DNA of 64,000 nucleotides from Oculina patagonica. Lineage: Eukaryota. The notes under the pieces are model-generated. The model was given only the letters and a program-made list of their open reading frames with translations, did not search any database and was not told the origin of the DNA. Where the stretch lies: positions 8,246,001-8,310,000 of the forward strand of contig NC_135760.1 of the NCBI RefSeq assembly GCF_052425735.1. The letters run 5' to 3'. The position numbers and the translations under genes were made by a program. How positions within the stretch are numbered: the stretch's first letter is position 1; each line of letters opens with the position of its first letter. Of the stretch, positions 24,994 through 52,900 are shown piece after piece.

Positions 24994-28400
<3,407 letters not shown>

Positions 28401-29768: not shown

Positions 29769-32700
29769 ATGAAGAAAGAACTTGGTCACAACGTTTCTCG
29801 GACAATCACTGTCCACCACTTCTTCACGATTCTCAATTTTGTTATTCTGTTTATCTCGGTTGCTTGTCTGTCCGTCAATGTGTACATTCTACGCAGGGAA
29901 ATTGAGAGCGTGAAGGCCGACATTCGTCCCTTGGTGGTGAAGGAGAATGCGAAAAGTACTTCACAGTTGTATGACGATTATTTTGTCAAATCTCGGAAAG
30001 TTCGACAGATCGAACCAGGATCACACGAGATGGGGCCAGGACCGCATGAAATGCAGCCAGGAGCTGGCGGAGACAATGCCACTGAGTCTGCCGAGCCGAC
30101 TGAAGGCGAAATGACACCACATGAAGTTGATCCAGGGGCTGGCAGAGAAAATGCCACTGATTCTATTGAGCCGACGGAAGGCGAAATAACACCACATGGA
30201 GTTGATCCAGGGCATGGAGGAGAAAATGCCACTGAGTCTGCTGGGCCGACTGAAGGCGAAATGACACCGCATGGAGTTGATCCAGGGCATGAAGGAGGCG
30301 AAACAACAACTGAAGCTCCCCCGGAAGGGCATGGTGCGACAGCCGGTGCAACTAAGCTCAACTGCAGCAAGGTACACATATCCATTCACCCTGATATCGA
30401 CTTGAAACTGTTTTAAATAGCCTTTTCTTAAATTAAAATGCATCTTCGAAAGGTTTATTAATTTGAGAAATAGAATACTTTGTCAAAGTTTCTTTCAGTC
30501 CTAGTTTAAAACATTTATTCGAGAAGTCACTTTTCGGTTACAGATCCGTCTTGTAATGCAGATGTTTGTGTCGCAGATTAATGTTTGTGGAAAAGCTTTG
30601 CGATAAACCCGGGATGAACCAACTCAAAGTGCCTCTCAGCTGCGTCAGTCAGTCCCCTTTCCTTACCCCCTCGGCCCTTACAAAGGAGGGAGAGGATCAG
30701 TGACATGCTGAATGGTAGTTCATTGAAGTATCACGCTGGAGGAATAATAACCTCTTACGTACACAGAAGTTTTTTTTTTTGTTTTTGTTTTTTTTTTTTC
30801 ACGTCACGCAATCTTCTCTCCCCAACGCGTGGAGGAAAGATAGCGTGACAAGCCAAAGCTTAAAAGCTACGCTGGAGACTTAACAGTTGTTAAATTCTAC
30901 TCTTGATTCTCAAGTTCAACTGAATTATTTCTGTGAATGTTATCTTTTTTAGGATGCCCATGGTAACAATATTTGCACCGTAGGTAAGTAAACAGTCACT
31001 GGACGCGAATGTGGCTACTGGGCTGCAATATTTTACTTTTTAGTTTTAAAGGAGCTACGTCACGGGGATTTCGCAGATTTTTGGTCTTAGCTGCTCTGAA
31101 ATTAGTAGTAGGCAACTTCACGCATGAAAAACATTATCTTTGAACATCTAAAGGAAAATATAACCTCAGTTAATTTGCGGATATAAATCATGCTACGGCT
31201 ATAAATATCGAATTTTTTTTTAAGACGCGCGGAAACAACTTGAAAAGATCCGCTGCCAAAGAGGCTTGTTAACAGTTTCAGTGCTCTAAAATAGCAACTG
31301 TTAACAAGAATGCACCATTATTTTTAGGTTTTCTACGACACAAATATATGTTTTGGCTGTTCAAAAACTTGAAATCCTTGATAAAGCGCTGTTGATTATG
31401 CGTTATCATCATCAGCAGCTGCAGCTGCAGCAGCAGCTACATCGTCAGCTATTACATCACACGGCATAAAAATATCCAAAAAATAGGCCATTTCCGATAC
31501 CATTTGCCTCCATTTCAAAACGAGTCTACGTGCGAAACCATTCATATGAAAATGAGTTTGACCTTCAGCCCCATTTTCATGCAAATCAAACTCATTTTTG
31601 AATGGTTTCGCACGTAGACTCGTCTTGAAACAGGGGCAAAGGGTAACTCGGAAATGGCCTATTGTCGTTTAGTAATTATTATTTTTACTGTGTAGTTGGT
31701 GGAAGTCTTCTGGGAACTCCGGAAGCTCGTCAGGAGATAGAAGAAATGATTGAGTCTTACCTGGACAAAAAAGTTGGTGAGTGAGCTGTCATGTTGGTGA
31801 AGTACGTACTGGTTTAAAATGTTCAAAAACTGACTCTGCGTGCGAATACCTTTTCACATCATCATTGTATATTTTTACTTTTTATTCGTGTCTCTTAGGA
31901 ATTCTTTTTACATATATAGTCGTACCTAATTCATTCATTTTTGACTTGATAATGACATTTAAGCCTGGTTCTCATATTATCGTCCCGGTCGTCTCTGTCG
32001 CTTCAAAAAGTTTGCTTGCTCCAATCACCTCAGACTTTGCAAACGACAGAAGCGACAGAGACGATCGGGGCGATCATATGAGAACCAGCCTTAAGCGAAG
32101 GTCGAAACGTCGTTGCATTTAAAACTTTTAAATCAAGATGGTTTTAATCTTTTCGATTTTATCGCAATGTTTTTTCATTTAAAATCTATTTAGCTCAACT
32201 TTTCAATTGATGCTGTTTTATCCAAGCCATATAATGATTACCTCGACAGAACTCAAGTGGAAAACATTTCAGTCGCTTTGCTTTCCACCCTTGTTTGTGC
32301 AAGAGCTAAATTAAAATAACCATCATACGTCGCACAATCCAATTATTTCTCGTGCAATTATTACCATTGAATGCCTTATTTTTGTTTCCAGACCCTCCGG
32401 ATGGTGGGGTACCGAGCGGGGAAATGAATCAGACTATTCAGCAGTACCTGAAATCATTCGCGCAGGAATCTCTCGGTAAGCCATACAGTGCTGAAAATGT
32501 TCGTTGGTTTCTGTTTCATGCATGTGTCTTTAAGTGTTTGTTCATGGTTTTAGCGTGGAAGCCAACGAAATGGTCAAAGAAACAAAAAGTTAGAGCTCAA
32601 CAGAAGGACTTCGTTTCCACGACCCTCTGTATATTGAGGCAGTAAAGTAAATTTATTTAAGTAGATTTACAAGTGGGTTTTTTCTGTAACGTTCCAATTT

Positions 32701-35700
32701 CCACCAAGAATTGAGTCGTTCTACAGAGGCTCTTTTTTCATAATATTTAGGTTCCGACTTGCAGTGCCTACGCATGAGACGCGCATTTATTGTTTAACTT
32801 GTTTCAATTTGACACAACTGGAGCAAAAAAAATGCGACACATGACGACTTCTTTGTACGTGTGAAAGCAACCATTCGTGTAACTTGAGTCGCAGCAAAAA
32901 CGCGCGTCAAGTTCTACAGACAACTGCCAGGTGTAGCAGCGCTCTTACTCCTTGAAAAATAACTGTTATAACAGTTAAGCCGGCAGTAAAATATTATTGT
33001 CAGAATTAAAAAAAACGCATGCTAACAAGCTCCTTTCGAACATTTTATCAAATGCTTACATGTCAAACCGTGGACAGTTATAATTTTAAGAATAAGTAAA
33101 TATATTCTTGTTTTCAGGTCCCACTTTTGTACCCGGCGCCTCAGCCCCAGGAGAAAAGACACCTCTGGACACGTACGTGGATGATTCTGTTTCGCGTGCT
33201 TTAATAAAGTACTTTGAAGACAAAGGAGACCCCGGTAAGCCGAGAGCAACATTTTGTAGAACTTGTAGCCTATTCACTGGTATCAAATTGTCAACTTTGT
33301 TTTTTCGTTTTGATTGAAATGAATTAGGAAACGAGCTACCGCATAAGGTGAGTAAAGGTCCATCAATCCTGGGAAAGATCCCTGCTTTTCGTATATCTGT
33401 CTCTTTAACATGAGCGCGCGCTTCCTTTTCTTGTCTTTTCTTTTCTTCCTTTTAGTACAACTGCGAGCCAAATGGTTTTTCAGCAACGCAAAAACAAAAA
33501 AACATTTGCAAAAAAAGTGAAAGTTGACGCACATATTGTCATTTTCCTTCTGCATGTTGTCCTACTTTTAAAGGTTTTGCAGCACTATTACCGACGCGCA
33601 ATTTACTGCCGGAAATAAAATAAAAAAAGAAACTGATTTCAGTTATCCCTCTGACGTCCCACATGCCCTACCTGCGGTTGGAGTTTCATTGAAGCACGTG
33701 AATGCACATGAATAAAATGAGTGTTAGAAAGGTGAAAAAAAAACCGAACACATCATGAAAGAAAAATGACTGCATTCATTAATTTAATACATGGATAATA
33801 CATGGATTGCATGGAAAGCATCAATGTTGCTTGGATGGCATATGATTGCTTAGTTGCAAGAATTGCACCAATTACATGGTTTGCATGAAACGACACATGG
33901 TTAAATACACTGCATGATTTAGTTTTAGTTTAGGTATGCCAATGCATGAATAAAGGGCCATAAATTGCATGACTGCATGAGTTACTTGCATGATTTGCAT
34001 GAACAGCATGTGCATGAATTGCTTAGAAGGCATGCAATGCACGAATGATTAGTTGCACCGATGGAAGAGTTACATAAATTGCATGAATGCATGACTTGCA
34101 TAAATTGCAAGGTTTACATGAATATCGATGCATAGTTACATAAATTGCATGAATGCATGACTTGCATAAATTGCATGGTTTGTTTGAATATCGATGCATA
34201 GTTACATAAATTGCATGAATATATGACTTGCATAAACTGCATGGTTTGCATGAATATCGATGCATAGTTACATAAATTGCATGAATGCATGACTATCGTA
34301 AATCCCATGGTTTGCATGAATATCGTTGCATGGTAAATACATTGCCTGATGTACATATATAACGCAAAGTTACGTAAACTTGGCTTAGTCCTCAACGCTC
34401 GGCGGGCGCCAAAACTTGTGACTAGCTTATCCCTTGAACAACAGATCCTACAATCTTCGGTAAGTAGAATGGTACGACTTCAGTTTGTGATTATTTTTAA
34501 AGGAATTTTCGATATCCTACGCGGTACGACATCCTTTCACGTTTCAGTTATTTTTTTCATTTAAGGTGGACTCAATTTTTCCTCATCAAAACTGCCAGAT
34601 AATCACACTATCCAGAGTCTTGTAGAGGCTTATGTCGAGAACTATATCGGTGGGTATCCTACGGCATGCCACAGGACCAGACTCGTACCTAGTCGCTTCT
34701 CTTGCCTTTTGAGCGGCGCGCAAGGCATCAAGGGAAGGACGAACTTATTTACTTTTTCTATGTCCTTCCCATCAACCTCTTCGAACGTAGCGAAAACGAA
34801 AAAATGAGTAACGTCTGGGCACGAGTCTGCCACAGGACTGTGTTTCATGTTAACATTTGAACAGTACACAGTTTCGAAGATTTTGACATCCCTACGCCCG
34901 AATATCGTTTTTCTTTAGTTTTTTCCTTTCTTTATTTTAAGATGGACTCAACCTTTCCTCGTCACAGACGCAACAACAGCCGCCTGATAACCGCACCATC
35001 CAAAACTTTGTTCAGGCATATGTAGATAAGTATGTAGGTTGGTATACTGTGCATCCCACATTGTGTCCCTTTTTGTTATTGTTTGATCCAATTTATATCT
35101 TGTAGCATTTGACATTGTTTTACTTCACTAAATCCGTGTTCTTTTGTCATTCGAGATGAACGCAATTTTTCCTGGCCACAACTACCTGATAATGGGACTA
35201 TTGCGAGCTTTGTAAAGGATTACGTGGATACTTACGTGGGTGGGTGAGCTGTGGCATGACTCTGTTGTTTGTGTTAGTCTTTGAACAGGTTCATGTTCTT
35301 TCATATTTTAATATATATATTAAGAATTATTATTGAGAATACAGTTCTTTTACGTTGATGTCACGTCCGTTTTTTTTCATTCAAGGTGGACTCAATCTTT
35401 CCTCGTCACAACCGCTGTCACAGCTACCTTATAACAGCACTATCAGGAACTTTCTAAAGACATACGTTGATAACTTTATGGGTGGGTATACTATAGATAT
35501 CACACACGACTGTATTGTTTGCGTTTTTCTTCAAAATATTTCAATGTTTCTTTTGCTGGACTTCTAGCTGGACTCAATTTATCCTCGTCACAACCACACC
35601 CCTTTGATAACCGCACTATCCAAAACTTTATAAAGGATCATGTACATGATTACGTTGGTTAGTATACTGGAAAACGTCATTTCAATGTCTCGTTTGTGGC

Positions 35701-38700
35701 AATCATTGTGAAAGTTATTTTGTAAAAAGATTATGACATTGTTTTAAGAGAATTCTATTCATCTTTTATTTGCCCTTTAGGTGGACTTAATATTTCCTCA
35801 TCACAAACGCAGTCAAGACCACCCAATAACCGTACTATTCAGAACATTATAAAGGATTATGTGGACGAGTATGTAGGTGGGTATACTATGTCAGACCACA
35901 TAACTATGTCTTTTGTATTAATCACTGAAGTTTATAACATCCGTTTACATTGATACCACTCCTTTTTCATTCAAGATGGACTTAATCTTTCCTCATCACA
36001 ACCGCAATCACTGCCGCCAGGGAACCAAACTATCCAGAGCTTTCTGGAAGCGTACGTTGATAACTATATGGGTGGGTATACTGTGCGATACCAGACGACT
36101 GTGCCCCTTCTTTTAATCTTTAACAAGTGTTATAATTTCCAAGACTTCTTATGTCTTATTTCTTCTTTTCTTTTAGCTGGACGCAATTTGTCCTCATCAC
36201 AACAGACGCGTGAAAACCAGAGCATCCAAAAGTTTGTAAAGGATTATGTTGACGACTATGTTGGTGGGTAAAATGTGGCATTCCATATGTTCAATGTTCA
36301 AAGATCATTCATCTTAATTTTACGTTGATGTCAATCGCTATTTTTATTTAAGGTGGACTCAATCTTTCCTCGACACAAACGCAGCCACAACCGCCTGATA
36401 ACCGCACTATCCAGAACTTTGTAAAGGATTATGTGGAACAGTATGTTGGTGGGTGTACTGTGGCATGCCACCAAATGAATTGTCAGTGTTAATTCAAATA
36501 CGTTTATAATTTCAAAGATTACATATCTTTTCGGGTTGATGTCACTCCCTATATTTATTCAAGGTGGACTTAATCTTTCTTCGACACAGCCGCAACCACA
36601 GCCAACTGATAACCACACTATCCAAGACTTTGTTAAAGATTATGTTGATGATTATGTTGGTGGGTAAACTGTGGCATGCCATTCACTCTGTTGTTTGTTT
36701 TGATCATTAAATAAGATTATGAGTAACACATTGATGTTACTCACTATTTTTATTCAAGGTGGACTTAATCTTTCCTCGACACAACCTCCTGATAACCGCA
36801 CTATCCAGAACTTTGTGAAGTACTATGTTGACGAGTATGTTGGTGGGTAATTGGTGTAATGCTACCCAGTGAATTGTCTATAATTTTCAAAGATCATACA
36901 TCTTTTCACGTTGTTTTTTTAATATATTCAAGGTGGACTAAATCTTTCCTCGACACAGCCGCAACCACAGCTTTCAGACAACCGCACTATCCAAAGGTTT
37001 CTTGAAGCATACGTTGATAACTATATGGGTGGGTTTACTAACGACTTTATGTGTTGTTCATGATCAATAGGCCATTTCCGAGTCACCCTTTGCCTCTGTT
37101 TCAAAACGAGTCTACGTGCGAAACTATTCAAATGAAAATGAATTTGATTTGCATGAAAATGGACCTGTAGGTGAAACTCATTTTCATTTGAATAGTTTAT
37201 GCACGTAGACTCGTTTTGTGACCGAGGCAAAGGGTAACTCGGAAATGGCCTATTTTATCTTTTCTAAACTTACAACATAAGTCACATGCAAAGCAATTCA
37301 GTTTTGGGCATGCTGTCACTTAGCACGCGCTTTGATGTTTGTGTTATTCTTCAACCAGTTTGTATTGGAATTCTAAGATTTCTAATGCCGTCTCTTTCTT
37401 GTTTTAAGATGGACTCAATGTTTCCTCTTTACGACCTCAACTGCCTGATAACAGTACTGTCCAGAACTTTTTAGAGGCTTATGTCGATAACTATATAGGT
37501 GAGTATACCGTGGACAGCACACGACTGCGCTGTTTATTATTCTTGTGAAAATTATTTTGAGCTCTAAGGCTTCTAACGTCTTATTTTATCTTTTTAGCTG
37601 GACTCAATTTTTCCTCGTCACAATCACTTCCACCAAATAACCGCACTATCCAGAACTTTGTGAAGGATTATGTAGACGAATATGTTGGTTGGTACCCTGT
37701 GACATGACACGTCATTGCATTGTTTGTGTTAATCATAAAACAAGTTGACATTTTGTAAGATAACTTGATGAAATTCCGTTAATACCACAACTATTTGATT
37801 TGCATGGAAGGTGGACTCAATCTGTCCTCGCCGTCACAACCACAACCGTCTGATAACCGAACTATCCAGAACTTTGTAAAGGATTACGTTGACGAATATG
37901 TGGGTGGGTATACTGTGCCATTCCGTATAAAGCTAGGCTAAGCATTTTTGTATAAATCATCAAACAAGTTTATGATCTCTAAGGTTATAAAATCCTATAA
38001 CGTTTATACCACTCTTTTTTGTTCAAGGTGGACTCAACTTTTCCTTGTCACGGCTATCAGATAACCACACCATCGAGAACTTTGTTGAGGCCTACGTAGA
38101 TAAATACTTAGGTGGGTATACTATGGGACGCCACATAGTTTTGTTGTTTACATGTATGGTATTCTTCGAACAGTTATATTATTTCTAAGATTTTAAATCT
38201 CTTTCGCTTTTTAGTTGGACTCAATTTTTCCTCGTCACAAATGCAACAACGACAGCCTGATAACCAGACTATCCTAAACGTTGTAAAGGATTATGTTGAT
38301 GAATATGTCGGTTAGTATATTGCGGAACGCTATTGACTGTTTTGCTGATTATTGAACAAACTTATGACTTTTTTATTTGCATTTAAGGTGGACTTAATCT
38401 TTCTTCATCACAACCATTGCCTCAACCGCCCGATAACCACACCATTCAGAACTTTGTAAAGGATTATTTGGATGAGTATGTAGGTGGGTATACTGCGTCA
38501 CGTCATATGACTTAGCCTGTTCCAGGCTCTCGGTAGTTGAACGGGAGCGTTTTTCGCTCTCCCATGACTACCGAGTGCCTGGAACAGGCGACACATGACT
38601 ATGTTTTTTGAATTAATCATGACCTCATAATATCTTAAATAATAAAGTTCTTTTCACGTTGATACGACTCATATTAGTTTTTTTTTTTAGACGGACTAAA

Positions 38701-41700
38701 TCTTTCCTCGTCACAACCGCAACCACAGCTGCCTGATAACAGCACAGTCCTGAGCTTTCTTCAGGCTTATGTTGATAGCTATATGGGTAGGTATACTGGA
38801 TTTTTTGTGTATTCTTTGAAGAAAATTATAATTGCATGATATATATAATATATCATTTCTTTTCTTTTTTTAGCTGGGCTGAATTTGTCCTTGTTACAAC
38901 TGCAGCCACAACAGTCTGATAACCGCACTATACAGAACTTTGTAAAGGATTCTGTGGACAAATATGTGGGTGGGTATACTGTATCATGCCATACGACTTT
39001 GTGTTTTGTACAAATCATTGAACGAGTTTATTGTTTCTAAGATTATAATATCCATTCCCGTTCATACCATTACTTTTTTTATTTAAGGTGGCCTTAACTT
39101 TACCTCATCACAACCGCAAACAAAGTCGTCAGATAACCGCACTGTCCAGGACTTGGTTGAGGCCTACGTAGATAAATACTTGGGTGGGTATACTGTGGGA
39201 TGCAACATAGTTGTGTTGTATATGCAACTCTGCGAACAGTATTTATTTATTATTTGTTAGATTTTAAATGCCTCTTTCTCTCTTTTAGCTGGACGCAATT
39301 TTTCCCTGTCAAAATCACAGATAAGATCGCCTAATAACCGCACTATCCTGAACTTTGTAAAGGATTATGTTGATAAATATGTCAGTAAGTAAACTATAGA
39401 ACGCCATCTGACTGTATCGGTTTGCTTAAATCCTCGACAAAGTTTACATTTTGTAAGATTATGATATTCTTCTAAGTATATGGCATTTTTTTTTATTTGC
39501 ATAAAAGGTGCACTCATTTTTTCCTTGTCCAAGCTATAACCATAACCAAAACTTTGTAAAGGACTATGTTGATGAATATGTCGGTTAGAATATTGCGTCA
39601 TGCCATAACACAGTGTGTTTGTATTTAATCATTGAAAACATTCATAATTTCTTAGTTAATAACATCCCCTCACTCATATACCACTCCTTTGTTTATTCAA
39701 GGTGGACTCAATCTTTCCAGGCCACAACAACTGCAACCACAGCCGCCTGATAACCACACACTCCAGAGCTTTCTAGTGGCATATGTCGATAACTATATGG
39801 GTCGGTATACTGTATTCTTTGTGTTAATCATTGAATAATTTTATAGTTTCCACGATTTCTTTTGACTCATTTTCTTTCCTTTTTTTAGCTGGTCTCAATC
39901 TGTCCTCGTCACAATCGCAACTTCAACCGTATAATAACCTCACTATCGAGAAATATGTGAAGGCTTACGTTGACGAATATTCCGGTGGGTATACTGTGGT
40001 GTACCGCGTGATTGAGTTGTTAATATTTTAAACAATAGAGAATTCTTTTAAGTGGATGCCATAGTTTGTTTTGCATTGTAGATAGGATCAACATTTCCAC
40101 GTCACAGCCGCAATCACAACCGTCTGATAACCGCACTATCCAGAACTTTGTAAAGGATTATGTGGACGAGTATGTGGGTGGGTATACTGTGGCATTTGAT
40201 ATGGCTGTGCACAAATCATTGAACAAGTTTATAGTAACATATTTTTGAGATTATAAAATTACGTTGACGTTGATACAATTCCTTTTGTATTCAAGGTGGA
40301 CTCAACATTTCCTCGTCACAACCGCCTAATAACCGCACTATTCAGAACTTTGTAAAGGATTATGTTGATGACTATGTCAGTAAGTATATGATAGAACCCC
40401 ATGTGATTGTATTGTTTCTGTTAATCTTTGACTACACAGTTTACATTTTGTAGGATGATGAGATTCTTTTAAAGATATGCCGCTTATCTTTAATTTGCAT
40501 TGAAGGTGGACTCAATCTTTCCTCGACACAACCACAAGTACAACCTTCAGATAATCGCACTATCCAGAACTTTGTAAAGGATTATGTGGAAGAGTATGTA
40601 GGTCGGTATACCACGGATAGCTACGTATAAGTGTGTTTTTTGTGTTTTTACTATCAAAATACGTGAATATGCTAGTGTGTTTCAAGAATAAGGCATCCTT
40701 TAACGTGGATATTTCCGTATATTCCTTATTCAAGGTGAGCTCAATATTACCACGTCACAACCGCAACAACCCCCGCCTGATAACCGCACTATCTTAGATG
40801 TTGTAAAGGAATATATAGACCAGTATTTGGGTGGGTATGCTGTGACCATGTTGTTTGTGCCTCATGACTACGTAAACATTTTCTAGTAAGTTTATAACAT
40901 CTTTCACATAAGTGTCTTTCTCTTTTCTTTCACTTAAGGTGGACTAAATTTGTCCTCGTCACAACCGCTTGATAACCGCACTATCCATAGCATTGTAAAG
41001 GCTTATGTAGATACGTATGCAGGTGGGTAAGCTGTGGTATATTAGTGACTCTCTTGAGCAAGGTTATAGCTTTTAAGACTGTAAATTCATTTTAGTATAC
41101 TATGGCTTGCCAATGGCTGTATTGTTCCCGTTATTTTTGGGCAAGTTTACAGTTGTTTTTTTTTTTAATTTTAAACTCCATTCATATGGATATCCATTTT
41201 TTCTCGTTTACACGGTCTCAATATTTCCTTATCTAAAGGACAACCACTGCCGCCCGATAACCGCACTATCCAGAACTTTGTGAAGGATTATGTGGAAAAG
41301 TATGTAGGTGGGTATGCCATGGCGTGCAACTGGACATTGTTGTAAGTAATCTTTGAAGAGGCTTTCATTTTCTAAGATTATGACATCTTTATCTTGATGT
41401 CTCGATGTCTTGTTATCTTTCTTTTAAGATGGTCTCAATTTTACCTCGGTGCAACTGCAACCACAATCGCCAGCTGATAACCGCACTATCCGGCACTTTG
41501 TTAAGTCTTACGTAGAAGAGTATGTAGGTGGGTATGTTCTGACCTTGCTGTTGGTGTTAATTTGTGATGCAGTTTTTACTTTCACTGATTATTACGTAGT
41601 CTGAAATTCAGCCGTCCTCTCGTCCTCTCGCCCGCGCCCCTCCGTTGGGGGGTTGGGTCGAGAGGACGGCTGAATTTCAGACTAATTATTACGGCGCTTT

Positions 41701-44700
41701 CACTTGGGTTCGTCCTTGCTTTTTTTTCATTTAAAACGAACTCAACTATCTAATAATTGCACTATCTAGAGCCTTGTGAAGGTTTATGTAGACAAAAATA
41801 TCAATACGTAGACGGCAGAGGGTCGTATGTCTGTATTGGTTGTGTTAACCATGGAACAAGTTTATAGTTTCGACGATGTTTCACCAAGATTTGTTTTTTA
41901 TCCTGGATGCTTTTTCATCTAAGGTGGACTTAACCTCTCCTCATCACAAGCAGAGCTACAGCCGCCTGATAACCGCACTATCCAGAGCTTTGTTAAGGCC
42001 TACGTAAACGAACATATCGGTAAGTATGCCGTAGAGAGAAAGGAAGTAGCTTTATTAACCTGTATTGTTTGTGTTAACCTCTGAAAAAGCTTATATCTTC
42101 CGTGATAAGAGTCTTTTTACCTGAATGTCGTTTTTCTATTTTAGTTTATGTGGACTAAACGTTTCTTTATCACCCCCCCCCCCCCCCCAACCTCCTGACA
42201 ACCGCACTATCCAGAACTTCGTAAAGGATTATGTAGACAGCTATGTGGGTGGTTTTTTTTAGAAGTTAAAATTTCTTTGTTATTTGTCTCAGTCTTTGAA
42301 GTTTATATTTCGTTAGATTATAACATCCTTGCACTTTTAACCCACCTTTTTTAAACTTTTTTTTCGCTTTAGGTGGAATCAATCTTTCTTTGTCACAACC
42401 GCAGCCTGATAACCACATTCTCCAGAACTTTGTAAAGGATTCTGTAGATGAATATATCAGTGAGTACACTTTAAAAGTCCATTGGACTGTTATTGTTTGT
42501 TTTTATCGATGAACAACGTTATATTTTCCATAACAATGATAATCTTTCACCTGAACACTTTTTCCTGTCTTCATTTAAGGTGCACTCAACTTTTCTTCGC
42601 CGCAACCCCAAGCACCTAATAACCGCACTATCCAGAACTTTGTAAAGGATTATGTCGATGCGTATATAGGTTGGTATACTGTGTAACAGGGCCACATCGG
42701 CTATGCTGTTTGTGTGTATATTTTTTTAAGATTGCGATAACCTTTCACACTGGCTGTCTCTTTCCGTTTTTCATATTCAAGGTGGTCTTAATCTTTCCTC
42801 GTCACAACCGCCTGAAAATGGCACTATCCAGGACCTTGTTAAGGCTTATGTAGATGAATATATTGGTTAGTATACTGTTCCATACCAGTGACTGTTAACC
42901 TCTAGGCAAGCTCATTATTTCAACGATCGTCACATCTTTTCACGCGAATGTTTTTTTTTTTCAAGGAGGACTCAATTTTTCTTCCGCACTACTACAACCG
43001 CCCGATAACCGCACTATCCAGAACTTTGTCAAGGATTATGTAGACGAGTATGTGGGTGGGTATACTGTGGCATGCTACTTTACAATATTTTTTTTGTGAT
43101 CAACTTTGAACAATTTTCATTTCACTGTACGTCTATGTCACTTCTCTTTTTTTGTTTAAGGTGGTCTAAATTTCACCTCGTCGCAACAACGACCGCAACC
43201 ACCTGATAACCGAACTTCTATCCGGAATTTTGTCAAAGATTATGTAGATGAACAAATCGGTTAGTATAATCTGGAATGTAACGTGGCTGTGTGGTTTGTT
43301 TTGACTAGCTTTTGAGAAAAGATAAGTTGTTAAGATATTAAAGGGACTGTGTCACGGTTAAGTATATTTTGCCAGATACTCACTATGAAACGTAATGTTT
43401 GCAAAGAAAGTACTTCTATGGATCTAGATGACAAAATCATAGCTTCGACTGCGACCAAATGTGTCTCCCGGGCGTTATAATTTTTAAAAAGTTTTAAGCA
43501 AACAAGATATTAACTTTGAAAACTGTTCAGCCCAACAATATTTCAAAACCCGTATCGCAATCCATTTTAATCTTCGTCGCTTTTGGCCATCCATACCTCC
43601 TTTTGTATTTGCTGTGTTATTGAAATGTTCCTTCACTGTTTTAAGAAGTTATTATTATATTTCAACGAATTTGATGGTCATTTCCCATGCCTTAATTTAG
43701 CTAAAATCCGTGACACAGTCCCTTTAACATCTTTTTAACCTGATGTCACTTTTTTGTTCTTTATTTAAGGTGGACTCAATCTTTCTTTGTCGCAAGCGCA
43801 ACCACGGCCACCTGATAATCGCACTATTCAGAACTTTGTAAAGAATTACGTAGATAAGTATGTAGGTGGGTATATATACTTTAGCATACCTTAATACTGT
43901 GTTATTTGTGTCAATTTTTTACACGATAGTCAATGCTTTTTTTTTTCTTCTGCAATCTAGGTGAACAAAACCTTCCCTCGTCACAAACGCAACTACAGTC
44001 GCCTAATAACCGCACTATCCAGCACTTTGTTAAGGCATATGTAGATAAGTATATTGGTGGGTATATAAGGATCAGATGACTGTGCTGTTATTTGTAAATT
44101 GTTGATCTCATTTTTCATGAAATATTGTCTTTCCCTGCAGATGTAAAAGGTTACTCGTGCGTTGATACAAATGAGAGCAGTTTTAAATTTAGAGGCTGCA
44201 CGATACTGTGTTATTGGGCAACAGAAAGACTTCAAAACGCAAACAAGTCTTCTGTTAAAATGTCAGAGATGACCAATTCCAGGGGAAAAGGGGCAAATCA
44301 ATAGAGAAATATTTTGGAGTATAAGGTTTTTCATATGGGAAAAATACGCTTTAATGGGAGGACTTGCAGCTTTTGCATGTTAATTGACTTTATCTGGCTT
44401 CGTGAAAGAAACATGAATAAACTGCATGTATATGTTGCTGGTTAACCTGCATGCATGAATATGATGCATGTTTCATTGCATGTGTGCATGCTTTTGCATG
44501 TTATTTGCACGTTTTTTGACTTCATCTGGCTTTATGAAAGAAACATGAACAACTGCATGTGCATGTTGCTGATTTATTTGCATGTTGCATGATGAATATG
44601 ATGCATGTTTTATTGCATGTGTGCAAGTGTGCATGTCTTTGCATGTTATTTGCATGTTTTGTTGTCTAAATCTGGCTTTATGAAAGAAGCATGAATAACT

Positions 44701-46926
44701 AGTGCATGTTGCTGGTTAACTTGCATGCATGCTGCATGAAGAATATGATGATGCATGTTTCATTGCATGCGTGCATGCTTTTACATGTTGTTTCATGTTA
44801 ATTGACTTCATCTGGCCTTATGAAAGAAGCATGAATAAATGCATGTGCGTGTTGCTGGTTTACTTGCATGCTGCATGATGAATATGATGCATGTTTCATT
44901 GCAAGTGTGCATGTCTTTGCATGTTATTTGCATGTTTATTGACTTCATCTGGCTTTATGGAAGAAACATGAATAATTGCATGTGCATGTTTGCTGGTTAA
45001 CTTGCATGTTGCATGGTGAATATAATGCATGTTCCATTGCATGTGTGCATGCTTTTGCATGTTTTTTGTATGTAACCTTTCCTCAGATGGCAGCAATCTG
45101 AATGCAAAAATCAACGAGGTGGTTACCTCGCGCCTGAGAAAAACCAGTACAGGTTAGTTTATTCTTCTTTCAGCCGTCAAAATGATCAGCTACGAGAATT
45201 TCGAAGTTGTAGTCAGTCTCTGAAAAGAAATTGCGTTTTAAACTCGCTTGTTTGCTTGTTGGGAATAAACTTAACCCGTTTATGATATGTCCTAGCGCCT
45301 TTTGCATGCATGTCGCACACCTTAATGTTAAATGCATGTAGCTGTTACGTACTCTATTTTCGTTGACTTACACTGGATTTCCACTGACGCGTAATTCGTG
45401 CGTGAAACAATGACAATGTATGAACGACTTGCGCATAGTTAATAGAGGGAAGTGGTTAGGAAGCCTGGCAAAGTTCTTTGTTATATGTTTTTGTTCGCTA
45501 TTTTGGGGGTTGACCCTGCACAAAACCTGAGAAAATACAATAGGTGGTTACGTGTGTTCATGCAACTAACCAATTGAATCATAGCGATTACGTAATTCAT
45601 GCATAGTGCATGAGCGCAAAACAAAAGATGTGCAGGGTTGTGGACCTTCCAACATAAATCTTGGCCTCTTTGTTTGCTCCTTTGATGTTTGCCGGGCTTC
45701 CTAACCATTTTCCTATATTAACTATGACTTGCGTAAACGTTTACGTATGTCGTTCATACATTGATGACGGTCTCTAATTTTTTTTCACGTACGTAAACGC
45801 ACGTAAAAAATTAGGCGTCACTGGAAATTACAGTTGAAATCCACCTTTAGAGAAAAATGTATTATCTTTTTAAGACGGAATCCACTAGGAAGTCGAGTAA
45901 TATTTATTAAAGTTGGACAAAAATCAAGTACCAGAATAATTTAAATCCTATTGCGTTATTTCCTACCCTTAATAAAAGGTAAAGATGTAAGTAATTATCC
46001 GTGATAACACCAGCAACAATTTCTTATCAGAGTCTGAGAAAATGAATTTCAAAGTTCACAAGGTATGGGCAAAATCTCACGTGTAGCCATTTTGTAAATT
46101 CATTCAGTGGAATTCAGCGGAACTTCAAAATGTGTTTTCGATGTGTGGTGTTGTTAGAAAAGATTTCTTTTGATAAGATATTTGAAGCAGTAACAAAAAA
46201 GTTTGCAATAAGGTGGAAATAACTCTGGTACAACAGTTTCTTATCAGAGTCTGAGAAAATGATATTTAAATTTCACAAGCTATGGGCAAAAGCTCACATC
46301 TTTTAAGCGATTCAGTGGAATTCAGCGGAACTTCAAAATGTGTTTTCGATGTGTGGTGTTGTTAGAAAAGATTTCTTTCGATAAGATATTTGAAGTAGTA
46401 ACACAAAAGCTTGCAATCAGGTGTAAATAGTTTTGGTACATAATTTTGTCCAATAACTACTCGAAGTCCTGGCGGATTTCCTCTTAAAACCTGAAAACTT
46501 GACGGCGCGCTTCTCAACACTTCTATATCCTTCTTTACTCCAATTGCTGAAATTGGAAATTCACTGCGACAATCATTTATCACTCTCATATTAGCCTGCG
46601 AACAGGCTCCCGAGTGGGGTTTTACGCGAGCGAAGCGAGCGGAAGAGCGGGGCCTGAGGGGGAGCCTCCCGCGCCCCCCGTACTCCCCCTCAGGCCCCGC
46701 TCTTCCGCTCGCTTTGCTAACTCCACTCGCTTCGCTCGCGTAAAAACCCCACTCGGGAGCCTGTTCGCAGGCTATCTCATATACATCCGCAGTTCATATA
46801 TGAATCATTTCATATACATTACATCATTTCACTCCTCTCACGGGAAAATATGAACTCACAATTGACCTCGCTTCCAATGTGTGGCTTCAATTAATAGCTC
46901 AGTTGGTGGAGCATCGCACCGGTATC

Positions 46927-46960
<34 letters not shown>

Positions 46961-49900
46961 TGAATTTTTTTCAGGCTTCTTTATTCCAATTGCTTAAATT
47001 GGAAATTCACTGCGACGATCATTTATCACTCTCACTTCTATATCCCTTATTACATATGAACACCGAGTTGTATGACGTTGCTCACTCACCGCGAGTCTTC
47101 TACAGCGAAATGGTAAGAGCATCTGAATGCTACCCAGTGAGAAGGTCATCGTTTTTACTCCCATTGGGGAATTTAGTGGTGGTTGGAACATCCGATACGA
47201 TCGGCCGGTCGGGGACGATGAAGTCCCAAGGAGAAATTCGAAAAAATTAACGTATAGGAAAAATACACTGGGAAAGACTTTTAGAACGTCTGTGGAATCC
47301 CGTAAAAGCACTGTTATTCGTGTCATGTTTGCATACCATACAAAAAGCGGCATAAAACGGTGCATTACCAACTGTACAACATGATTGTTCAAGGCAGGAA
47401 GCTTGCCATGCCAAGCCAAGCTATCCTCTTTTTACTATAAAATCAGTCTGCCTGATCCTTCGTTTAACCAATTTATCCGTGTATCTGCCGCTATTTGTTT
47501 TTCACAGGTTTTCAACTTGTTTACTGTGTACGTATAACAATTTTTATCGTAATTAAATGACTGTACCTGAATATCAGCCTTGTCCCTAGGCGTTCTCACG
47601 TCCTATTGTCCGTGCGAAGTCTGGGATGGGAACGGGCGTGTCTCAGTGACGTCATGGCTCACAATCGGGTCCAAGTTTTACCGAGCCGAGAACTCTAAGG
47701 ACTAGGCTGCCTGAATATATGTCTATCAATTGTACAGATTTATGTTTTGTTTTTTTTCAACTTTGATAAGGGTGATTTCCCTTAAAGATTTTTTTCTTAC
47801 TTTGTATTTGTATTAAAATGAGTATTGTAGGCTTGAGATGGCATGATTTTCAGCTTTTGTCCTGACTCCTTAAGCGTTGCAAAAGGTTTTGGGTTGATTC
47901 AATCTATTTTGATGCAAGCACAGACGCCCCCAGAAAAAATCTTGATTTCTAAAATTCTCATTCTTAACAGATGTCAAGGCAATTCCTGGTCCTCCAGGTC
48001 CCCAGGGAATTCAGGGCGCTGCCGGTCCCCCTGGTATTCAAGGTCCTATCGGTCCTCCCGGTAATCCGGGGACTTCTGGTCCCGCAGGAGCAGCAGGATC
48101 ACCCGGCCCCGCAGGGGCTGCAGGTTCTCCGGGCGCTAATGGTATTCCGGGACCTCCCGGCCCACCGGGGACTCGGGGACAGCGCGGCTTACGTGGCCCG
48201 CCCGGCCCCCCTGGGAGGCCAGGGACGGCCACAACAGTGACTCGCCCAAAAGTAGAAGAACAAGAGAAAGATCCAAAGGAACCTGTGAAGAAAGCACCGT
48301 CGTTTGAAGGATTCTGTAAGTTTTTACACTTTTGTCAAAGCTACTTTTTCCTTTTTCCCATTTTTATTCTAAAGAATGAAATTGGCCAATCAAAGTGAAA
48401 AACTGTGCAGTAAGTGGCGGAGTTGTCAAGTTTCACGTCCGCTCTCCGACAATTGTCAAATTCACATCCTTCGCTACTTGCGTTTTGATTGGCCTATTTA
48501 AGAAGTTGTCAAAAATAATCAAAAAACTTTGTCGGTACAGTGCAAAGCACAGTAAGGGCCTGTTTACATGATTCCGGAATGACTTTCATTCCGGAACGAA
48601 ACTCGTTCCGGAATGAAGTTCGTTCTGCATTCACATGACAGAGTCGACCGGCTCAACCTAAAGCGTTTTCACGTACGCGGTTTTCGCGCGAGATCAAAAC
48701 AAGATGGCGCATGTTTCGCGCAAACATGTTTTTATGCTCATGAATGGCCGTATCTGCAAATTTAACGTGCAATTTCACCATAGAGCTGCTTCTTTGGGCT
48801 AAACAGCAAATGCTTTTAAGTTATTTCGCTCTGAATTCAAACTGTGGCCTCCGTATGCGATTTCATCTCGGAACGAAATTCGTTCTGTGTTTACATGATA
48901 CCAGAATGAAATGTCATTCCAGAACGAAAATTTCATTCCGGAATGAAAACCGGAATGAACTCATTTCGGGATGACTTGACTTTCGTCTCGGTATCATGTA
49001 AACAGATACAGAGAAATATGTGGGGATGGAATGAACTCGTTCCGGAATGAAAGTCATTCCGGAATCATGTAAACAGACCCTAAGGGTTGCTTACATTTAG
49101 TCTATAATGTGTTTTCGTCATTCAACGGCCTTGGATATATGTAAAAGGCCCGTTTACACAGGCGATTTTTGTCGCGCAACTCACTGCAATTTTTGTCGCG
49201 CCGAAGTTGCATAAAGTCTCCTGCGATGTCGCAGCGATGAAAATCGCCATGAAATCACCGCGAGTTTGCACGCGTGTAAACTAGCGGTGATATCGCAGGA
49301 GTTTCAAACCTGTTCGAAACTTCATGCAACTTCGGCGCAACAAAAATTGCATTGAGTTGCGCGACGAAAATTGCCTGTGTAAACGGGCCTTTTACATATC
49401 CAGGGCCTTTGAAATAAACGATAAAATTGATTCATTCAATTTTTTAATGCTTTCAGCTAAGCCCAACATTACCACCCCGCCTCCGAAATCGTACACAGCC
49501 ACGAAAGGAGACATGATAGTCCTACAATGCTCAGCTCATGGAACACCGAAACCTGAAATAATCTGGGCGAAAAAGAACAGCGGAAGAGCTGTCATAGGAA
49601 GTCACTTCGTCTTAGAAAATGCCCTCCCAGAGGACACTGGGAACTGGACGTGCAGGGCAAGTAACTTCATGGGTACGGACACCGCTGACGTTGAAATCGT
49701 CGTCGCAAGTAAGTGCTAAAATGCAAGGTATTAAAGGGACTATGTCACGGAGATTTCGCAGATTTTTGGTCTAAATTGTTCTGAAATTAGTGGAAGGCAA
49801 CTAAACCCATAAAAAACAATATCTTTAAACATCTAAAGGAAGTTATAATCTTAATTTGCGGAAGAAATCAAGCTAAGGCTACAAATATCGATTTTGTTTG

Positions 49901-52900
49901 ACGATACGCGGAAACAATTTGAAAACGTTTGCCTAACGTTTTCAAATTACAATCCGTTTCCATCCGAGCCATCTGCATCCAATAATGCTAGTTAACAGTT
50001 TCAGTGTTTTAATATAGCAATTGTTAATAAAAATGGACTATTATTTCTAGGTTTCATGCGACAAAAATATAAATTTTGGCTGTTAAAAAATCTGGTAAAA
50101 TCCGTGACATACTCCCTTTAAGGCCTGGCAAAACGAGGATAATTGTTTTCTCGTTTAGCCATGTTTCCATGCCCCCTGAAACACGGAATGTTTCTGCGGT
50201 GTAGCCGAAGCAAATTTTGCTTCCTGGAAGCAAAATTGACGCTGGAAACAATGCTTCCCGTTTGGCAAAACTGGGAAACATTTGGAAAACATGTGCGCGC
50301 TACAAATGTTTTTGGAAACATGTTTTCTCGTTTTATTAGGCTTTTAGCCAGAATTTACTTGAATTGGAGTTAATCACTGCCAAGTTGACATCTAACATGC
50401 CAACAACACTTGAACGAGCAATAGGCTAGGTCGTTAAAAGGGTGAGTAACCTCGTCACAAATAAATCTTTATAGGTCATGCTACACGAAACAATTTTTCT
50501 TGCAATTTGCAGCCCAACAATGACGACCATAAAATATTGCAAGTTGCAAAGCGGGTTTTACAGGTTTGCAATTTTTGTACGCAAGTTGCAACGCACCGTC
50601 TGGAAATTACCATCTAGAGATGTCATGCAAGCGAAGGACTTGCTCCTATTGGCTCCTTAAACCTTTAAATAAAACTGCTTTGCAAATCGCGACTGTCATG
50701 TCGCACCCAGCAACTTCTCTCAGAACGTTACAAAAATAGAAGATAGTTTCCTTGCAACTTGCAACGCAATATTTTGTTGCATTGCAGGTTGCAAAAACGA
50801 GGTGTTAAACCGGGAAGTTTTCTGGGTACCTGGCAATGCAATGTTCGTTGCGTTGCAAGTTGAAAGGAAAATTGTCTCGTGTAGCATGGCCCGGCCTTAT
50901 CTAGGGAGTAGCGTAGTTCGTAGCACTGCAGTTAAAAATGTTTGGGGGGAGATATTTGCTGGGAGATCTTTGCTGGCGTTAAAAATGTTCGGGTTGTAGC
51001 CAGGCATGTTAAAAATTCGAATTAATAAGTTGACACTGGCTAAAAATATTGTTTTTGGACGTTTCGGCCACTACTGTTGCCTTTTTCAGCAAGATAAAAA
51101 TGCAAATGTTCAACGGCGTCCTGTTAAAATATTTAACGAATGTGTGAAAACTAAATGAACTTTCCGAGTGCAACAAAAGTCTCTAGAGCATTCTTAATGA
51201 GTCTATAAATTCTTAATGCTATTGTAAACGTTTGGTAGCGCTATGTGTTCGTTTATAGCGTTCCTATCTCGCACAGAATGCCAAGCTTCAAGAATATAGT
51301 CGTTGTTTCAACACCGTTGACCTGTCAACAATTTCGACGCACTCCAAATCTATTTGATGGTCGTTAAGCATATGGTGTTTTGCCAACAAAGACTTTTTAT
51401 CCAATGTTGCGATGGCCTTTGCGTGTTCTTTCATACGTGTTTTAAGCGCGCGTGATGTCTGACCAACATAAACATTGCTGACGTCATTGTTCACATTTTG
51501 CCTCATTGGCATACGACTTTGCATAGAGAAGGCATCGTACTATATACAAAGTGACTTCAGATATCTTTAAAAGCTTGTTAAACGTAATTTTCTGCGAAAT
51601 ATTTTAGCATTTTGTGTGCAATATTCAAGGAGATATAAGCATTCAAAAACTGAAAAAATTCTAGGTAGCAAAAGCGCCAATGAGCCCATAGCATTTTTTG
51701 TAAAATATCAAGTTTTCAAACCTATGTCACAGAAAAAGTAATTAATACATCGGGCTCAAATTTATAGCGAGGGTTATTGTACCATATACTTTCAATATTT
51801 AGAATTGATATTATTGTAGCTCGATTAGAAAGTGAAACGCTTTTGCTTATGAGGCAAATATTGCAACCAAGAATCCCCTATAACTTACTCTCAAACCTCT
51901 ATCTTCGTTAGCTGAGCCCAAGTTCACCGTAGCACCAGATCCAAAAGTCACGGCCTTCACAGAGCAAGTGACAGAACTAAAATGCATCGTTGAAGGGTTT
52001 CCGCCACCGAAGGTAGAATGGCGTCGTCAAGGCAACAAAGAGCTACCCTTTGGCAGACACTACATCCGCAATAACAACCTGTACTTACAGAATCCCATCA
52101 AGGAAGATGAAGATATTTACATGTGCCACGCTTCTACTCCAGCTGGCTCTGTTATGGGCGGTACTGAGGTCACCGTACTAACATATGGTAAGTTATTTTG
52201 GAGTGGTATTCAATTGCACGCATTTACTTGTGAAAAATAATTCTTTTAAGTGTGAATTAATTCGTGATTGTGACAGTTCAACTTCTGTGAATGTGACGTG
52301 GGATTTTCGTATTACATTATGACGTTTCGGACGTTAACAACAAGTCCATTCCTCTTTTAAAGGGACTGTATCGTGGCTGAATTTATTCTATTTTAAATTT
52401 TGTCAAATATTTGCCATGAAACGTCATGTCTGCAAATGAAATTACTAAAATGGATCTAAATGAAAAAAATCGTAGTTTCATGTCAACCAGAAACCTCTCC
52501 AGGGCATAAGAATTAAAGGTTACAAACAACCGAGTCTAATTTTGAAAATTGTTCAGCCTAAGAGTATTTCAAAAAACTACATCGAAATCCATTTCAATCT
52601 TCTCAATTTGTTGCCCATCCGTACCTTCTTTTGTATTTGCTGTATTTCAGCCAATTGGCTGCCATTTTCCGATGCCTAAATGTGACAAAGCTCCTTTAAG
52701 AAAGTTAAAGTACAAACAACAGATTGTTTTCAATTGGCTTTAAAGTAGCTCTTCCGAGTTTTTTTTTTTCTGGCCTCAAAGGTAGCCAAAAGTGGATAAC
52801 ATCCTAAAATTCTCTTTTTATAGACAATGTAGAGGCGAAAATGTCAGCAAAATAAAGTTGTTGAATTTTGACTGAGGGACATTTTCAAGCACCAATAAAC

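Follow-up and report, generated by a model that had tools for sequence, protein, structure and literature searches.

The subject of this study is a 64,000-nucleotide stretch of the genome of the stony coral Oculina patagonica (contig NC_135760.1, positions 8,246,001 to 8,310,000; hereafter the window, to which all coordinates refer), and in particular a gene that carries a long array of short, similar exons. When the long isoform of the Pocillopora verrucosa ortholog was aligned to the window by tblastn, it matched 29769–55649 on the forward strand, a gene of 26 kb with the array (34566–44056, +) in its middle. The parts of this gene follow each other in the order putative signal anchor, two phase 1-1 exons, array, a 66-nt exon, collagen, three Ig domains, Sushi and D8C. 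An earlier note on this DNA had counted about 42 units in the array and interpreted them as the exons of a stalk; we found exactly 42, comprising 40 open units, one that is frameshifted and one that survives as a remnant.

Units were delimited by the conserved 5' and 3' unit ends and were then read in the phase-1 frame. The open units are 84 (n = 7), 87 (n = 2), 90 (n = 5), 93 (n = 1), 96 (n = 21), or 99 nt (n = 4) long, all of them multiples of 3, and they are separated by introns of 77–510 nt. Every one of the 40 is phase 1-1. The acceptor is AG in 38 of them, with AC at 41212 and AT at 42150 as the exceptions, while the donor starts with GT in all 40 and reads GTGGGT in 24. Joined together, the 39 usable units give 1,206 codons free of stops. 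Mean pairwise identity is 0.71 among the exons, compared with 0.61 among clean introns and 0.55 among shuffled introns. Five elements with terminal inverted repeats have inserted in the array, each of them in an intron (34678–34829, 37066–37254, 38515–38589, 41590–41691, and 43332–43733). The earlier note had described an exon-intron array with conservation bounded by AG and GT, intact units in multiples of 3, a uniform 1-1 phase and five transposon insertions confined to introns, and in all of these respects its description holds, with the exon-intron difference in identity and the RNA joints at predicted boundaries (below) both agreeing with it. The element at 43332–43733, which occupies the longest intron of the array, has terminal inverted repeats of 26 nt and reaches contig depths of thousands in each of the four RNA runs considered below, and is presumably a multi-copy expressed transposable element.

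A repeat search returned many families of 21–35 diverged direct copies between 34.5 and 44.1 kb. Tandem Repeats Finder, run on 30000–48000, reported the flanking minisatellites and missed the array, because its copies are only some 60–80% alike. A profile built from the 40 unit peptides had a single other match in the rest of the window, a weak one at 32427–32456, and matches to the repeat in the 529-Mb genome were confined to the array locus. Within the array a higher-order duplication is visible at 38028–40177, where a five-unit block of about 1.06 kb has copies at 38028, 39088, and 40082; the units that pair best, introns included, are 38028/39088, 38691/39702, and 39289/40296.

The array units are real, expressed spliced exons. 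RNA contigs from four runs of three studies cover 39200–45199, that is, the 3' half of the array and the region downstream, and they contain GT..AG joints at eight predicted boundaries: 39800>39889, 39984>40082, 40177>40296, 40379>40506, 41307>41429, 42019>42373, 43055>43161, and 43865>43961. The earlier note had made its reading depend on the existence of spliced reads over these exons, and these joints supply them. The best-supported joints of the four runs connect neighboring units, and the only clear skip (42019>42373, in all four runs) removes the open unit at 42150–42248 (+), the one with the AT acceptor. This skipped unit also contains a run of about 15 C at 42189–42203, which encodes a run of prolines and is likely a slippage-prone tract in a decaying exon. 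The frameshifted unit at 39508–39584 (+) has stops in its translation and is a pseudo-exon; no contig lies on it in any of the four runs, and contig depth is zero throughout the bin 39400–39599. The open unit with the AC acceptor, at 41212–41307 (+), is covered by RNA and uses its donor (41307>41429); its 5' boundary is not among the RNA joints shown. Either the AC is a mutated reference allele or the unit uses another acceptor. The degenerate remnant at 41737–41766 (+) adjoins an inserted inverted-repeat element. In addition, the intact unit at 39289–39384, which has a GTAAGT donor, lacks contig depth in three of the four runs and has low depth in the fourth, which may reflect skipping, absence from those individuals, or misplacement of the contigs. 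Several backward or long-range joints with extra letters (40151>39701, 40587>39702, 40371>43769, and 43053>42787) were not counted as alternative splicing; the best reading is that contigs of one unit were placed on another that resembles it, or that alleles differ.

The unit peptide is about 31 residues long, with N3 and N16 invariant and T18 conserved in at least 90% of units. It begins with a Pro/Gln-rich linker that bears an N-x-S sequon and continues with a conserved I-x-x-F-V-x-x-Y-V-x-x-Y-V stretch that starts at an N-x-T sequon, so that each unit has two sequons and the joined array has 76. The joined array amounts to about 1,200 residues with no cysteine, a pI of 4.6 and a net charge of about −48. 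Among the paralogous units dN/dS is about 0.25 at a dS of about 1, where synonymous sites are near saturation, and among 22 collinear pairs of orthologous units shared with a second coral locus (L011) it is 0.19 at a dS of 0.55. Judged by these ratios the unit peptide is under purifying selection, and both lie below the value of about 1 that the earlier note had named as speaking against its reading. None of the three outcomes that the note had listed as refuting it was observed.

Database searches indicate that the repeat is an undescribed family with no named relative in Pfam, PDB, or the ESM Atlas; the earlier note had likewise not recognized it as a named domain. A single unit had no match in Pfam, and a 721-residue array obtained summed weak Pfam matches only, no single stretch passing by itself. 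The best match in PDB (E 0.015) is unrelated, leaving no credible solved structure, and a feature search of the ESM Atlas with the repeat gave no usable match. A profile search of 1.84 billion proteins recovered one annotated gene-model cluster, represented by XP_066018861.1 (isoform X7 of P. verrucosa LOC131781004), together with about 118 short fragments. Ten of these fragments were looked up and came from ENA, JGI/IMG, or Logan assemblies, and the two contigs that were fetched are orthologous loci. A search of the literature found no paper on the gene identifiers and, among the papers listed, nothing relevant on coral collagen/D8C proteins.

The exons on either side of the array define the rest of the protein. 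Exon 1 (29769–30371, +, 3' end approximate, candidate donor AAG/GTACAC) is an open reading frame with a start codon that is conserved in the ortholog, and is 55% identical to residues 1–94 of the P. verrucosa protein. It encodes a hydrophobic stretch of more than 20 residues (residues ~18–40), for which the 19-residue Kyte-Doolittle maximum is 2.48. At 30057–30287 the same exon contains three tandem repeats of 75 nt that encode a 25-residue Pro/Gly/Glu-rich motif, each with an N-A-T sequon; they form a second, unrelated sequon-bearing repeat adjoining the predicted membrane anchor. Two phase 1-1 exons precede the array. The first (32392–32475, +; 84 nt; boundaries AG/GTAAGC; 71% identity to P. 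verrucosa residues 421–451) has an N-Q-T sequon and a helix-like stretch and is the place of the weak match to the repeat profile; it appears to be a distant relative of the units in the array. The second (33118–33234, +; 117 nt) is 76% identical to residues 448–485. Downstream of the array, a 66-nt exon (45087–45152, +) encodes 22 residues that match DGSELNQKIIEVVNSRLRTIT in the P. verrucosa protein, and a collagen exon of 345 nt (47971–48315, +; 70% identity) encodes 27 uninterrupted G-X-Y triplets. Both of these downstream exons, the two that were checked, share the 1-1 phase of the two exons before the array. They are followed by three Ig I-set exons at 49456–53477 (+; ~49456–49713, 51914–52180, and 53184–53470; Pfam I-set/Ig_3; 72–80% identity), a Sushi (CCP) exon at 54462–54638 (+; 88% identity to residues 1596–1654, with PF00084 precomputed for the ortholog), and a last exon at 55239–55649 (+) that encodes a D8C (uromodulin-like) domain (PF23283, E 9e-12; 89% identity to the C-terminus) and the stop codon. 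Outside the gene, the first coding exon of BCS1, a mitochondrial chaperone, lies at 27678–28400 on the reverse strand, head to head with the repeat gene. This exon is 91% identical to the BCS1 proteins of both Acropora cervicornis and P. verrucosa and therefore does not tell these lineages apart.

The ortholog, P. verrucosa LOC131781004, is annotated as an 'uncharacterized protein' (XP_066018855.1 and isoforms). It shares with the gene in the window the N-terminal anchor, the repeat, the post-array exon, the collagen stretch (PF01391 is recorded for it), three Ig domains, Sushi, D8C, and the head-to-head BCS1 neighbor. A search for orthologs with the C-terminal region returned only P. verrucosa along with generic collagens and Ig proteins. 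Near its N-terminus (residues ~140–250) the P. verrucosa protein has a second repeat family, of about 29 residues with N-x-S and Y-V-E-x-Y-F motifs.

Across four coral loci the number of units differs considerably, with 42 in the window, 47 in L011, about 33 in a third locus (L012) and 26 in P. verrucosa (locus L013), where about 23 of the 26 genomic units are used in isoform X1. The L011 array is broadly collinear with that of the window at 70–85% DNA identity. The units of P. verrucosa are not collinear with those of the window, and 38 of the 40 window units are closer to each other than to any P. verrucosa unit. Given the different unit counts and the five-unit duplication, unit number appears to change by whole-unit gain, loss, and decay, and since 22 units have stayed collinear with L011 at a dS of 0.55, this turnover must be slow. 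Units that are both old and collinear also argue that the array is not hypervariable. Six isoform models were recovered for P. verrucosa (X1, X2, and X4–X7), which carry 16–24 units in series. One short unit is missing from X4, one unit from X5, a block of 7 units from X6 and a block of 8 from X7, and X2 uses an internal acceptor within the last unit.

The two introns that bracket the array are marked by clusters of the hexamer TGCATG. The window contains 100 copies, where 35.5 ± 6.3 are expected, and they are concentrated on the sense strand of these introns. The upstream cluster (33808–34332, +) has 21 sense-strand copies and includes a 66-nt minisatellite at 34068–34349; the downstream cluster (44374–45061, +) has about 40, in a 137-nt minisatellite. 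Clusters occur at equivalent positions in the other loci (~1001–1500 and 14501–15500 in L011, 1–1500 and 12001–13000 in L012, and 17001–18000 in L013) and persist where the introns no longer align. The sense bias is strong in L011 and L012, whereas in P. verrucosa the downstream cluster is present and the upstream one is weak. A GCATG signal near the donors of individual exons was also considered and dropped, as it occurs in just 5 of 40 units, where it looks like an ancestral remnant. The intron with the downstream cluster (44057–45086) is the only array-associated intron that RNA contigs contain in all four runs (contigs span 44027–45115), with a depth between roughly one third and two thirds that of neighboring exon contigs, while other array introns have almost none. 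Reading through into this intron would meet a stop after 8 codons and yield a stalk-only product. At 44798–44934, two of the RNA runs, named X1 and X2 (not to be confused with the isoform models), lack about one 137-nt minisatellite unit and differ from the reference by about 3–6%; they come from individuals diverged from the assembly, with a minisatellite of variable length.

Taken together, we hypothesize that the array encodes the glycosylated stalk of the surface protein of a single gene, and that stalk length depends chiefly on how many exons the genome holds for it; we put the probability of this reading at roughly 0.7. The architecture suggests a type II membrane glycoprotein, in which an N-terminal signal anchor would be followed by about 38–39 joined units (about 1,200 residues with about 76 predicted N-glycan sites) and then by the 27-triplet collagen helix, which would be expected to trimerize the molecule, and by the three Ig, Sushi, and D8C domains. 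With a probable signal anchor on one side and, on the other, a collagen helix with a recognition-type head, the array has the position of a stalk, and on this point the stalk proposed by the earlier note fits the architecture. The array would form a heavily glycosylated, segmented stalk of short helices and flexible linkers and would keep the recognition head well away from the membrane, a task that in DC-SIGNR, class A scavenger receptors, and collectin-12 falls to the neck or coiled coil. Its length would depend mainly on the number of usable exons in the genome, changing slowly between lineages as whole units are gained, lost, or decay. In-frame exon skipping, which the 1-1 phase makes possible, may be a secondary source of length variants, perhaps under the control of the UGCAUG clusters that flank the array.

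Several points weigh against this reading. The type II topology is deduced solely from hydropathy and domain logic, and the surface location and glycosylation are predicted from the sequence. An AlphaFold2 model of three units consists of a disordered linker and a helix of 15–18 residues, three times over, at low confidence (pLDDT 52), and a homotrimer predicted for a segment of the ortholog that spans three units scored 0.00 at a pLDDT of 36 and speaks neither for nor against trimeric bundling. The RNA consists of short-read contigs that cover the array in its 3' half; the individuals sampled differ from the reference by several percent, and similarity between units makes several of the joints ambiguous. 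The isoforms of P. verrucosa are models from computational gene prediction. Further, the repeat is acidic and free of cysteine and might have a role in its own right, for example in binding, instead of serving as a spacer.

Among the closest functional parallels may be the neck of DC-SIGN and DC-SIGNR, type II receptors in which tandem short repeats of helices and short non-helical linkers project the head, and in which DC-SIGNR variants differ in repeat number (PMC2971551). The tandem repeats of the coral protein may likewise project its head, and their linker-helix pattern, taken from the low-confidence model (pLDDT 52), would be comparable. The DC-SIGNR neck differs in having 23-residue repeats, no stated N-glycans, a four-helix-bundle oligomer, and no collagen domain (PMC2971551). 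No sequence similarity between these proteins and the coral repeat was found in the PDB search. The coral protein can also be compared with the type II collagenous receptors, for which its 27 G-X-Y triplets downstream of the stalk and its predicted N-terminal anchor provide the likeness. In class A scavenger receptors (SR-A, MARCO) and collectin-12, a type II anchor is followed by a glycosylated spacer or helical stalk, a collagen triple helix, and a C-terminal recognition domain. However, the coral head consists of three Ig domains, Sushi, and D8C instead of SRCR or a C-type lectin, and the coral stalk is a 40-unit exon array, whereas theirs is a continuous coiled coil. By analogy, the coral protein may work like these receptors, although it is not a member of their family.

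In its exon organization the array resembles the PEVK region of titin, where many short repetitive exons give rise to abundant splice isoforms, vary in length between species and are hard to annotate (PMC6469411). The likeness, one module per exon with all exons of the coral array in the same phase, is one of organization only. Titin is an intracellular, unglycosylated entropic spring of unrelated sequence, whose alternative splicing has been documented well. The Pfam and PDB searches gave no credible match that would point to PEVK/PPAK homology of the coral repeat. The coral gene is thus not a member of the PEVK, DC-SIGNR, or type II collagenous families, because sequence similarity to them and their defining head domains are both absent. 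A further comparison is DMBT1/gp-340, a secreted extracellular pattern-recognition glycoprotein whose modules lie on separate symmetric exons and vary in copy number, which changes binding. Its modules are, however, disulfide-bonded SRCR domains of 110 residues, and copy-number polymorphism within a species is documented there. Two other types of exon array can be ruled out. The earlier note had likened the locus to micro-exon genes, and this likeness fails on exon size, since the units are 84–99 nt, as against tens of bases at most in schistosome micro-exon genes, and the gene also has exons of at least 345 nt. A mutually exclusive cluster of the Dscam type is excluded by the splicing of adjacent units to each other and by the P. 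verrucosa models with their 16–24 serial units.

Alternative to a stalk whose length is set mainly in the genome, the array might generate many stalk lengths and sequences within one animal through regulated combinatorial choice among the 40 exons, in addition to allelic copy-number variation, as the earlier note had inferred. Several features would suit such a system. With all units in phase 1-1, any subset can be joined in frame; the donors are mostly GTGGGT and not GTRAGT; conserved UGCAUG clusters bracket the array; no contigs cover unit 39289 in three of the four RNA runs; and the six P. verrucosa models differ by single units, by blocks of 7–8 units, or, in X2, through the choice of another 3' splice site. 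We treat the tuning of stalk length by splicing, whether regulated or combinatorial, as a hypothesis with indirect support. The RNA contigs, although unable to quantify isoforms, do not bear it out, as their best-supported joints in four runs all link neighbors and the sole clear skip bypasses a unit that lacks an AG acceptor, so that skipping of intact units is seen only in the P. verrucosa models. The individual orthologous identities of the units are kept under purifying selection, which fits constitutive use better than interchangeable cassettes, and a paralog dS of about 1 argues against frequent unequal exchange. We thus consider combinatorial choice unlikely as the main source of stalk length.

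A more specific conjecture, also on the doubtful side, is that the UGCAUG clusters make the 10-kb, 40-exon block a switchable cassette, from which an Rbfox-like factor would obtain a long-stalk, a short-stalk or a head-less product. Clustered intronic (U)GCAUG motifs are Rbfox-dependent splicing regulators in mammals (PMC12435732), and the coral clusters resemble these in being tight, on the sense strand, and in introns adjoining the exons concerned. They differ in that they are minisatellites bracketing a whole 10-kb exon array, and an Rbfox role here is hypothetical. A search for the Fox-1_C family in the genome of the window found no match, which is uninformative, as control genomes were equally silent. 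If the conjecture is correct, a short stalk would arise whenever blocks, or the whole array, are skipped in frame (33234>45087 is in frame), a head-less, stalk-only product would arise by retention of intron 44057–45086, and a cnidarian would here control the reach of a receptor by splicing at the level of whole blocks.

It is less probable still that the repeats themselves are the functional surface, with acidic, glycosylated amphipathic helices binding lipids, microbes, or the calcium or mineral of the calcifying matrix, and copy number setting avidity rather than reach. The low pI and strong negative charge of the array, its conserved hydrophobic face, and the purifying selection on the sequence of each unit are consistent with such a role. 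The summed weak Pfam matches are to amphipathic-helix families (APOC4 and ApoLp-III), which reflects composition and not homology. The searches of Pfam, PDB, and the ESM Atlas, however, found no homology to known matrix or lipid-binding proteins, and a position between membrane anchor and collagen is the classic position of a stalk. Finally, the idea that the units are decaying satellite or pseudo-exons, coding in appearance only, could appeal to the four defective units among the 42 (39508, ~41737, 42150, and, on its acceptor, 41212) and to the transposable elements inserted in the region, but it is already contradicted by spliced RNA joints, a dN/dS of 0.19–0.25, and 1,206 stop-free codons in an array that is conserved in four coral loci inside an annotated gene.

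The glycosylated stalk of genomically set length thus remains the reading that we prefer. What is new here is a family of repeats not described before, present in four stony-coral loci, and the predicted architecture of a surface protein that has escaped study, whose putative head combines collagen with Ig, Sushi, and D8C domains, all of them common in adhesion and recognition proteins. There is also a practical warning, as standard gene prediction and repeat detection cope badly with arrays of this kind, and a single annotated gene-model cluster with the repeat was recovered from the protein libraries searched. For the biology of these corals, the locus would offer a clean natural example in which to ask what determines the reach of a receptor, with 26–47 units across taxa, each under purifying selection, and with conserved candidate splicing-control clusters flanking the array.

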